Shown in pieces: positions 46,204 through 53,232 of a stretch of DNA of 64,000 nt; the stretch's first letter is position 1; each line of letters starts with the position of its first letter. The notes beneath the pieces are model-generated. The model did not search any database and was not told the origin of the DNA. It saw nothing but the letters and a program-made list of their open reading frames with translations. The DNA comes from Salpingoeca rosetta (taxonomy: Eukaryota > Protista > Choanoflagellata). The translations under genes were made by a program, and so were the position numbers. The stretch lies in NCBI GenBank assembly GCA_033442325.1, contig JAWQFM010000023.1:1087908-1151907 (forward strand), read 5' to 3'.

Positions 46204-49200
46204 ATGTTTGGATGCTGTGGCAAGGCGTCCCTGGGGTATGCCGTGGTGGCGAGCCTGGATGCAAAGGGGCTCCAGCAATGGCTGCGCAAGCGAGGAATGA
46301 CCCAGCAGGCGGATTGCCTTGACGGCGTCACCGGTGGCGAGCTGGTGCAGTACGCCATCGCAGATGCAACCTGGCTGGTCACTGCACGCCACATCCCCGT
46401 GTCCTTGGCCATTGTCCTCTTGACTCTGCTTGACCTGAACACTGCCAAACTCCAAGAGCTTCGCGGTGACGACAACGGTAACTCAGATCAGCGCCAAGAG
46501 CACACGCACACAGTACCACACGGTGCAGGTGCTGCCACCTCCTCCGTCTCCACCTCTTCATCCGCCCTTTCAGCCAAAGCAGCCAACAAGAACAAGGGCA
46601 ACAAGCACGCCATTGGTGGGCTGGACGTGGCCCCTGCGGTAACTGCGCTTGCAACATGCGACCTCTCTTCGGCTGCCCACCCACGATCCCTCGCCGCCAA
46701 GACAACGGATAATCAGATAGCCAACGAGACCGAGTCACCTCGCCGAGTCGCCATGGTAAAGCGAGGGTCGCCCGTGACGCTGCGCTCCCTGCTGGTCAAC
46801 ACCGTCAAGGGGGCGCTCGTCGACACCATCAAAGGCGCCGTGGAGAGCCTGCCGTTTGGATCTGTCGCCGTTGCGCTGTGCACGGACGCCGCTGATCGCA
46901 TCAGCACCCTCAGGGACAACAAGGACAAGGCGCTCAGCCTGGCACGGCAGGCACGCAAGATCGCCAAGCACGGGCAGGTGATTCTCGTCTACTTTGAACA
47001 GGCGCAAGATGGCGAGGACGGCACAGAGGAGGCCGAGGAACTGCTTGAGCACACGTTCTACTCGTTTCGGCTCGCGGTCGATGCCAGCAACGGCAAGAGC
47101 GCTCACAGCATCATCGTGCGCTTCCTCGGCTGCAAGGACTTTGCGTCGGCACTGGACGAGGCGCAACAGCGGCTGGTGCAGGCGGTTGCCCTCACCAACC
47201 TCATCTTCAACTCCATGCAGGCGCAGAAGCAGCTCGGCAGCACATCATCCTCAACAGCAGCGCTCACCCAAGCACACGGAGATGCAGGTGCAAGTGAGGC
47301 GGGGTCCACGAATGCCCTGGCAGCATCGACATCAGCAGCGGCAGCAGCGGCGCAGCAAATGAGTGGACCAGCCAAGGTGCTCTGTGCGAGCAGCGCTCAC
47401 GATGCTGCTGCTTTCTGGACGGACAATGGCTTTGACACAAAGGCTGATTTGCAAACGCTGCTCGACGCGCTCGATCTCTGGCTGTGTGCGTCACCCATTG
47501 CCAGCCGTGGCGTGGAGGAGGCGACGATGGCTGCTCTGACCGATGCTGACATTGCCAATAGCGACCGCCTGTACTTCTTCTTTGCGGGAAAGCGTGGCCT
47601 TGAAACCGTCACCGTGCAGCGCTTTGCCAAGTTTGTGGGCCGCGCAGAGTCCCTTGCACACGCCGTCCTTCCCTTCGTTGACGCACATGTGGACCTTGCA
47701 GACGGCGGCGAACCCACTACAACAGCAACAACAACGGGAACTGCAACGGGAACAGGAACTGCAACGGGAACAACATCAGCGGGAACGGAAGGATCAGGTA
47801 CAGCAGCGTCAACATCGACACCAAGAAAGCAGTCCTCAGCAACAGCAACAGCAACACCAGCAAGGCAACCGGGGCTGGGAGACAGCGATGGCATCGCACT
47901 CTTGCGGGCAACGTTCCAGCCAGTTACATTCGGACGCGACCTGGTGAAGCACCAGAAGGCATTTGCGGAGGGCACGCGGCAGTGGGTGTTTGAGGCGTTT
48001 GAGAAGTGGGCACGCATGCCTGCAGAGGCAGAGGGAAGCCGGGTGTTCTGGGTCAAGGGCACTGGGGGCCTCGGCAAGTCCGTGATTGCTGCCCAGCTTG
48101 TCAAGCGGTACGGCAGCGAGGGGCACGCAAACAGGGTGCTCAGCAACACAAGCTACGGCAATGGGCGCGAAGGCGATGCTGATGGTGAAAGCGACGCTGG
48201 TGGTTGCGGTGACGATGATGATGGTGATGATGACGATGCCGCTGGTGACGAGGGCAACACGCCACTGATTGCCGCCCATTTCTTCTGCAAGCACGACGAC
48301 GCCAACCGCAACGACCCACGCAAGGCCATTGCCACGCTCGCGTACCGCCTCGCCGTGCAAATGCCTGAGCTGCAGTCCGTGTATGCGCAGATGCTTGCCG
48401 ATGACGCCTTGCGCCGGGCCGTTGGTAGCCTGATTGACGGCAGCAGCGGGTCTGTGGACGACGCGTTTGTCGAGTGCTTGGCCAAGCCGCTCTGGCTCGC
48501 ACTTCAACTCAGACAGCAGCAACAGCAGCAGGGAGAAACAAAGGGAGACGCAAACGCCGAACAGGAAGCAACGGCGCACGCAGCAGATCCGGGCACATCG
48601 ACAGGCAGTGCAGGCGCCGGCGACAGCGACTTGTCCACACAACAGCCACAACAGCCACAACAACAACAACAACAACAACAACAACAACAACAACAACAAC
48701 AACAACAACAACAACAACAACAACAACAACAACAACAACAACAACAACAACAACAACAACAACAACAACAACAACAGCAGCAGCAGCAGCAACAGCAGCA
48801 GCAGCAGCAGCAGCAGGCCGAGGCTGCGTTGACTGGCCACCCCCACGTGTTCATCCTGATTGATGCACTGGACGAACTGCGTGCCGGATCAAGCCGCCAG
48901 CAGCTGCTGCGCATCATTGGCCGCCACCTGCCGTCGCTGCCGCCCTGTGTTCGTATCATCGTGACCTCGCGACCGGAAGACGATATTGTCGCCTTCTTCT
49001 CTGCGCTGTCGCCGTTTTCAATCGCCAAGCAGGACGAGCGCCACCGTGATGACCTCGAGTTTGCTGTTCGCCGCACTATTGTTCATCGCTCAAGCCTGCA
49101 CCGCCTGCCCCGCAAGCAGCAGGACGCTGTTGTCACTACCATCGTCGATCGCGCAGATGGCGTGTTCCTTGCGGTGCGGCTTATGGCCCGCGCCCTGCTT

Positions 49201-53232: not shown

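Follow-up and report, generated by a model that had tools for sequence, protein, structure and literature searches.

The window analysed here is a 64,000-nucleotide stretch of the genome of the choanoflagellate Salpingoeca rosetta, lying in contig JAWQFM010000023.1 (C23) of the 55.4-Mb, 68-contig genome that we searched. Its element of interest is a gene on the + strand at 46204..53232 that encodes a candidate NLR-like (nucleotide-binding, leucine-rich-repeat receptor-like) protein. An original prediction, made from the letters alone, had described the gene as one uninterrupted open reading frame (ORF) with an intact NACHT NTPase, C-terminal WD40 repeats, and an upstream helical region reminiscent of the four-helix bundles (4HBs) of MLKL, HeLo, and RPW8 proteins. 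The frame is single and uninterrupted from 46075 to 53232; an in-frame stop lies at 46072, and the first ATG stands at 46204 in the context GCCGCCGCCATG. The complete coding sequence comprises 2,342 codons plus the stop, with no intron detected in 46204-48600. With moderate confidence, we interpret the product as an NLR-like receptor of the STAND (signal transduction ATPases with numerous domains) class, in which a divergent MLKL_N/RPW8/HeLo-like bundle would serve as the output and act on membranes upon oligomerisation.

The gene is transcribed. In three stranded RNA-seq runs (2026), RNA depth over the stretch 46126-48600 was ~20-130x and confined to one strand, and no splice joints were found there except for cross-mapping between CAG repeats. 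This establishes a genuine, expressed gene whose first 2.4 kb are unspliced. Between it and an upstream transcript lies a trough of ~2-5x at 46034-46125, and the depth then reaches 11-50x, strand-specifically, at 46126-46217. Because of this fall in depth, the transcript probably starts near 46126-46160, and the rise that follows marks a probable 5' untranslated region at 46126..46203 (+).

The central part of the protein is a NACHT-type STAND NTPase (47971..48978, +), identified both by Pfam and by its motifs. It matches the Pfam NPHP3_N model with 52.5 bits against a cut-off of 24.8, and its motifs are intact: Walker A GTGGLGKS (residues 619-626; 48058-48081), Walker B ILIDALDE (residues 882-892; 48847-48879), and the TSRP motif (residues 918-925; 48955-48978). 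The Walker motifs conform to the GxxxxGKS/T and hhhhDxxDE patterns, which together with the Pfam score places the domain in the NACHT clade of STAND NTPases. The NPHP3_N match falls into two halves, one with Walker A (residues ~590-642) and one with Walker B (836-924), parted by an acidic and poly-Q insert of ~190 residues that includes a run of 53 glutamines (48658..48816, +). The Pfam NACHT model PF05729 itself is not among the matches listed.

The C-terminal WD40 region (50590..53181, +) contains ~13-14 blades as counted from repeat signatures, which extend from residue ~1463 to 2326. PF00400 matched 8 stretches with 194 bits, several of the many propeller models matched also exceeded their cut-offs, and the repeats are numerous enough for a propeller. 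They probably form two propellers. Poly-Q runs at 50779-50808 and 51058-51234 interrupt the region within the second blade region. No LRR, CARD, PYD, DEATH, or BIR domain appears among the Pfam matches listed for the whole protein (the best 25 of 40 families), and the NACHT-LRR arrangement of metazoan NLRs was not found in a search that covered residues 1800-2342 only as part of the whole protein. The uninterrupted frame, the NTPase, and the WD40 repeats of the original prediction were all borne out.

Upstream of the NTPase, close to where an amphipathic helical region had been placed (~46775-47220), lies a helical bundle domain of residues 191-343 (46774..47232, +). The stretch is conserved in six further places of the genome with E-values from 1e-41 to 8e-6, and it is therefore no chance amphipathic stretch. 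AlphaFold2 (AF2), supplied with the 23-sequence alignment A3, modelled it with a predicted local distance difference test (pLDDT) value of 86.4 and a predicted template modelling (pTM) score of 0.78 as a bundle of four helices preceded by an additional helix, and not as the different fold that the original prediction had named as its own refutation. In protein numbering, the predicted helices are the extra helix a0 (193-208), a1 (218-233), the kinked a2 (240-269), a3 (271-295), a short helix (303-307), and a4 (313-345), with a flexible PFG-containing turn between a0 and a1. The most conserved block, PFGSxAVALC, is rich in small residues and is located at the start of a1. Helix a2 is basic (6 K/R) and a3 is acidic (8 D/E), which in the model would confer a polar asymmetry on the bundle. 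A second, independent AF2 job on residues 185-505 reproduced the same bundle.

We consider it likely that this bundle is a divergent member of the superfamily comprising MLKL_N, RPW8 (the CC-R domain), and HeLo-like domains. A search independent of Foldseek against 48,161 PDB representative chains placed eight N-terminal bundles of cell-death proteins or NLRs within the top 30 for the first model (rank; score; residues aligned): NRG1.1 CC-R (2; 8.5; 111/121), the N-terminal domain of human MLKL (5; 7.8; 116, chain 1-123), Rx-CC (7; 7.5; 98), Sw-5b (10; 7.2; 109), mouse MLKL (15; 6.9; 100), AtMLKL3 (23; 6.4; 116), a wheat resistosome (25; 6.2; 87), and MLA13 (29; 6.0; 112). With the second model, the scores were 8.7 for Rx, 8.4 for NRG1.1, and 8.3 and 8.3 for MLKL, with a root-mean-square deviation (rmsd) of 2.7 over 100 residues for 4btf. 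The structural alignments are sequential, begin at MLKL residue 1-2, and take in the short helix between a3 and a4. Foldseek returned one compact match of high probability, again NRG1.1 CC-R (probability 0.97; template modelling score, TM, of 0.68 by target). As modelled, the domain would be a compact up-down four-helix bundle that superimposes sequentially and over its whole length on solved members of the superfamily.

Searches of the ESM Atlas pointed to the same neighbourhood. By shape, the top rows were plant Pkinase+MCAfunc/MLKL_N proteins, DUF7792, DUF7032, and fungal PigL_N (PF17111), with TM values of 0.55-0.60 by query. By language-model features, MLKL_N clusters came first with scores of 0.94 (188/256 features shared) and 0.93; the ten best named matches all belonged to one family or clan, and MCAfunc and RPW8 clusters followed. 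Because several of these clusters bear MLKL_N, DUF7792, RPW8, and MCAfunc labels on the same proteins, these models overlap. The nearest annotated neighbours in both the embedding and the shape searches are thus members of the MLKL_N/RPW8/HeLo-like superfamily. In a Pfam scan of all A3 members, the lowest E-value belonged to MLKL_N, which matched two of them; two unrelated families likewise matched two each. The MLKL_N matches, to the paralogue L002 (E 0.0052, 16.7 bits, residues 36-149 on HMM positions 8-118) and to the family member P0018 (E 0.021, 14.8 bits, residues 28-148 on HMM positions 6-112), share their register with the structural alignments, both being under the 27-bit cut-off.

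Several results weigh against this assignment or against the receptor interpretation built upon it. The bundle in the window has no Pfam MLKL_N match even at E 10, and none of PF22215, PF05659, PF17111, and PF14479 rose above threshold, the best value in the family being 16.7 bits against a cut-off of 27. Profiles A2 and A3 retrieved no MLKL, RPW8, or HeLo protein from all PDB chain sequences. The exhaustive profile search of 1.84 billion proteins reached nothing beyond the family itself, and a six-frame search of the genome with PF22215 gave one 24-bit match on contig C7, which was rejected as a low-complexity, non-coding-looking frame. Foldseek gave no PDB match below E 0.097 for the bundle model and nothing at E <= 0.001 for either model, and Atlas feature scores of at least 0.9 arise for 4-10% of shuffled proteins. 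Besides, NPHP3_N NTPases are also carried by non-immune scaffolds. The resemblance to MLKL/HeLo/RPW8 bundles that had been proposed holds in predicted fold, shape, and embedding neighbours; no sequence model reached significance.

Other matches in these searches were set aside. The only PDB-sequence matches of A2 and A3 were histone H3 and designed proteins (E >= 0.03), judged to be due to chance, and the sole Pfam match in the N-terminal 400 residues at E 10, Terminase_6C (E 0.12), is spurious. Alignment A3 was also used in a word-indexed search at E 10, in which none of 8,000 candidates (91-290 residues long) matched, and a word-indexed homologue search with the whole protein yielded, for the region 180-350, one Barroeca orthologue and no other.

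The bundle domain occurs in seven S. rosetta copies, namely that in the window and six others on contigs C15, C4 (three copies), C31, and C35, and every copy except that on C35 lies upstream of the same NACHT subfamily. A hidden Markov model (HMM) built from the seven copies was searched exhaustively against 1.84 billion representative proteins at E <= 0.001, and it matched 27 proteins in total. The named sources of these 27 are S. rosetta and the choanoflagellate Barroeca monosierra only, the rest coming from environmental assemblies; one member resides in a bin labelled as a bacterial metagenome-assembled genome, which we take to be mis-binning. The same NACHT was present in all long members amenable to checking, the middle module described below in most of them, and WD40 repeats in addition in the longest. 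This fixed company of NACHT, middle module, and WD40 fits an effector domain dedicated to that receptor, and we view the bundle as a small, lineage-restricted domain family serving one receptor type. Two of the S. rosetta paralogues correspond to XP_004987796.1 (annotated as 'WD-40 repeat protein') and PTSG_12916.

Individual members show some peculiarities. The closest paralogue, L002 (G000:C15:207963-211412), has a bundle 53% identical to that in the window. At a poly-Q tract that separates its bundle from the middle module, its reading frame changes from a 488-residue to a 524-residue frame, for which an intron, a frameshift, or misassembly of the CAG repeat could be responsible. L004 (G000:C35:402236-405472), which is P0003 (PTSG_10743), contains an acidic and basic insert of ~90 residues between a3 and a4, and no NACHT of the same subfamily adjoins it within the DNA examined; it may be a stand-alone bundle protein. 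A [DE]-L-P-E/D-P-P motif is found ~20-30 residues upstream of the bundle in P0007-P0011, P0019, P0024, and L002, and it is degenerate in the protein of the window (ATCDLSSAAHP).

Further modules, all three of them overlooked in the original prediction, flank the bundle. The protein begins with MFGCCGK (46204..46224, +), a candidate membrane anchor by dual S-palmitoylation of the GAP-43 type. Paralogues start with MFSCCGR and MSCCPRK, and homologues with the myristoylation-type MGICYSK and MGGKFSG; these N-termini look like GAP-43-type dual palmitoylation and myristoyl/palmitoyl signals. The recurrence of Cys-Cys and Met-Gly at the start of the family suggests lipid anchoring. Residues 16-88 (46249..46467, +) form a small helical domain that is conserved in three paralogues and is SAM-like by pattern only: it had no match in the Pfam or PDB sequence profile searches, and its Atlas features reached SAM clusters at 0.77, under the useful range. 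After the bundle, a disordered linker leads to the middle module, an EF-hand-pair-like domain with an invariant FW (residues ~378-496; 47335..47691, +). AF2 predicts two units (model residues 217-245 and 270-294), each made of a helix, a 3-residue strand, and a second helix, and the fold is described here from secondary structure, as the bundle dominated the searches with the two-domain model. The module has no Pfam EF-hand match and no usable Atlas feature match, and the one structural alignment that speaks for an EF-hand-like fold is a weak one to Cbl TKB.

Taken together, these modules suggest how the receptor might operate. The protein would be tethered to the membrane through acylation of its N-terminal Cys-Cys pair, and the WD40 propellers might hold it off until a ligand binds, as in APAF-1 and the fungal NACHT-WD40 proteins. 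Nucleotide-dependent oligomerisation of the NACHT-type module, as known from STAND biology, might then cluster the bundles. By analogy with MLKL, the NRG1/ADR1 resistosomes, and HeLo/HELL domains, the clustered bundles could insert into the membrane or permeabilise it, forming a pore or a Ca2+-permeable channel, and the outcome would be cell death or a strong ion signal. The cues that we count in favour of action at a membrane are the recurring acylation-type N-termini and the basic a2; a role in cell death or allorecognition is proposed purely by analogy.

The bundle might instead be a generic or Cbl-TKB-like (tyrosine-kinase-binding) four-helix plus EF-hand interaction module, in which case its role would be that of a regulator or adaptor and the protein would be a signalling scaffold that recruits partners rather than a membrane-active receptor. 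For the two-domain model, Foldseek ranks Cbl TKB first, albeit weakly; the Cbl matches have TM values of ~0.2 with an rmsd of 14-15 Å, and for the bundle alone Cbl scores at most 7.4 against 8.9 for MLKL and NRG1.1. Pfam gave no Cbl_N, Cbl_N2, or Cbl_N3 match at E 10, an SH2-like third module is lacking, and both the language-model and the Atlas shape searches return MLKL_N, MCAfunc, RPW8, and DUF7792 and not Cbl. We therefore regard such a scaffold as unlikely. An even more different picture, a ciliary or cytoskeletal STAND scaffold resembling NPHP3 or NWD1, whose N-terminus would be a coiled-coil-like docking element with no role in immunity or death, appears very improbable to us. Many fungal-type NACHT NLRs fall under the NPHP3_N model as well, the family has multiple copies (7 in this genome) and is lineage-restricted, unlike conserved ciliary genes, and the dynactin match involves long helical hairpins in an 838-residue chain and not a compact domain.

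A bundle truly of the MLKL/RPW8 type could also have a non-lethal output, such as a Ca2+-permeable channel or membrane remodelling in signalling or trafficking, for example in the response to bacterial cues that drive life-history switches of S. rosetta. The CC-R resistosomes of plant helper NLRs act as Ca2+-permeable channels, and non-lethal roles in trafficking are known for MLKL. This explanation shares the fold evidence with the receptor interpretation that we prefer; the EF-hand-pair-like module directly after the bundle could couple the output to Ca2+, and steady expression in ordinary cultures shows that the protein is tolerated. The EF-hand-like loops, however, do not follow the canonical Ca2+-binding consensus by eye, and no Pfam EF-hand match was obtained in the module. 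We judge a strictly non-lethal role to be quite unlikely, even though the data fit lethal and non-lethal output alike.

The surroundings of the gene deserve a brief description. Between 45850 and 48600, all S. rosetta reads, from the three RNA runs and from one contig set, show the same ~18 fixed differences from the window (~0.65%). Fifteen of these fall in the coding part, 10 being non-synonymous and 5 synonymous; the non-synonymous ones sit mostly in low-complexity linkers, with Y286F in bundle helix a3 as one example. Upstream of the coding part, there are small indels, namely a 15-bp insertion after 45939 in the contig set only and an additional C after 45980 and after 46157. In view of the fixed differences between reads and window, the window therefore represents another allele or isolate, or holds assembly errors. 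A long (CTCA)n/(CA)n microsatellite lies at 45600-45780, and beyond it comes a + strand segment, transcribed separately, with an RNA depth of 70-84x near 45850 and ~2x by 46034. This segment, transcribed up to ~46033, probably represents either the 3' end of a preceding gene or a short ORF from the ATG at 45830. Directly 3' of the stop codon, a (TG)n microsatellite of ~73 units extends over 53243-53392. Among the neighbours, the ORF at 30493-33819 (+) encodes a CCM2-like protein with an ICAP-1/PTB-like domain and a CCM2 harmonin-homology domain, and that at 36052-41445 (-) encodes a 1,797-residue receptor with fibronectin-III and tyrosine-kinase-like parts. The large neighbouring ORFs have no immune-type character, and the NLR-like gene is therefore not located within a cluster of its paralogues.

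Choanoflagellates have been reported to be without bona fide NLRs, NACHT occurring in them only together with ANK, TPR, or WD40 (PMC3879445). The Pfam picture of the S. rosetta protein agrees with these NACHT partners, and NACHT-WD40 proteins of S. rosetta were already noted in 2014 and dismissed as not bona fide NLRs, with their N-termini unmentioned (PMC3879445). In the full-text literature, which leaves subscription journals outside, we found nothing joining Salpingoeca with MLKL and only unrelated work for choanoflagellate, NACHT, and MLKL together; none of the literature matches listed links choanoflagellates to RPW8 or HeLo NLRs. The design principle of a 4HB-NOD-repeat receptor is known. 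New are a 4HB family invisible to Pfam, its occurrence in the choanoflagellates, which are the animals' sister group, and its combination with acylation and EF-hand-like modules.

It is quite possible, although we would stop short of calling it probable, that choanoflagellates own dedicated, membrane-anchored, single-chain receptors of the 'resistosome type', with a NACHT-WD40 switch acting directly on an MLKL/RPW8/HeLo-like bundle. If so, the 4HB-NOD executioner design, on record until now from plants and fungi, either goes back to the opisthokont ancestor or was assembled a third time independently; if ancestral, it would have been lost or split in animals into MLKL plus separate NLRs. A mostly unicellular organism would then permeabilise membranes in a regulated manner, probably to counter microbes or viruses or to control non-self at the level of the colony. 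For the question whether receptor-triggered regulated cell death is older than the animals, this expressed family offers a concrete candidate. It would also add a Pfam-invisible branch to the MLKL/RPW8/HeLo-like superfamily, with an unusual 4HB-EF-hand-like-NOD arrangement. Transfection and genome editing have been reported for S. rosetta, and the receptor idea is therefore directly testable.

Compared with known systems, the S. rosetta protein resembles Cbl TKB, which consists of a four-helix bundle, an EF-hand, and an SH2 domain, in having a bundle followed by an EF-hand-like pair; it differs in lacking an SH2-like module and a Pfam Cbl_N match and in a greatly different domain orientation (rmsd ~15 Å). 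Animal MLKL joins its 4HB to a brace and a pseudokinase and is controlled by RIPK3, whereas regulation in the S. rosetta protein would be exerted by a STAND NTPase and WD40 repeats; the S. rosetta bundle has the extra helix a0 and, instead of brace helices, is followed by the disordered linker and the EF-hand-like module. In plants, RPW8-type CC-R-NB-ARC-LRR helper NLRs are established. NRG1 and ADR1 contain NB-ARC and LRR where the S. rosetta protein has NACHT/NPHP3_N and WD40, and the bundles are only ~10-12% identical.

Fungi provide the closest architectural counterpart, albeit not in HET-E, to which the original prediction had likened the protein. The N-terminal 700 residues contain no HET match, and WD40 repeats of high identity are missing at the DNA level: Tandem Repeats Finder detected only CAG/CAA, an 18-bp unit, and TG arrays, and no WD40 repeat array of ~126 bp. 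Without long WD40-length DNA repeats, repeat shuffling in the style of HET-E is not evident, and HET-E-like repeat diversification was accordingly rejected. The comparison is better drawn with the HeLo-like-NACHT-WD40 arrangement, a common NLR architecture in fungi (PMC4986451). Compared with these fungal receptors, the S. rosetta protein has no Pfam match to PF17111 or PF14479, and it contains long poly-Q inserts, WD40 DNA repeats that are not near-identical, and several extras, namely the acylation motif, the N-terminal helical domain, and the EF-hand-like module between bundle and NACHT, all in a choanoflagellate host. Despite these differences, the fungal HeLo-like (HELL/SesA, PF17111)-NACHT-WD40 NLRs (Dyrka et al. 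2014, PMC4986451) have the same domain order as the S. rosetta protein, PigL_N/PF17111 clusters, representing the fungal NLR bundle, are among the Atlas shape neighbours of its bundle, and both families are multi-copy and lineage-specific.

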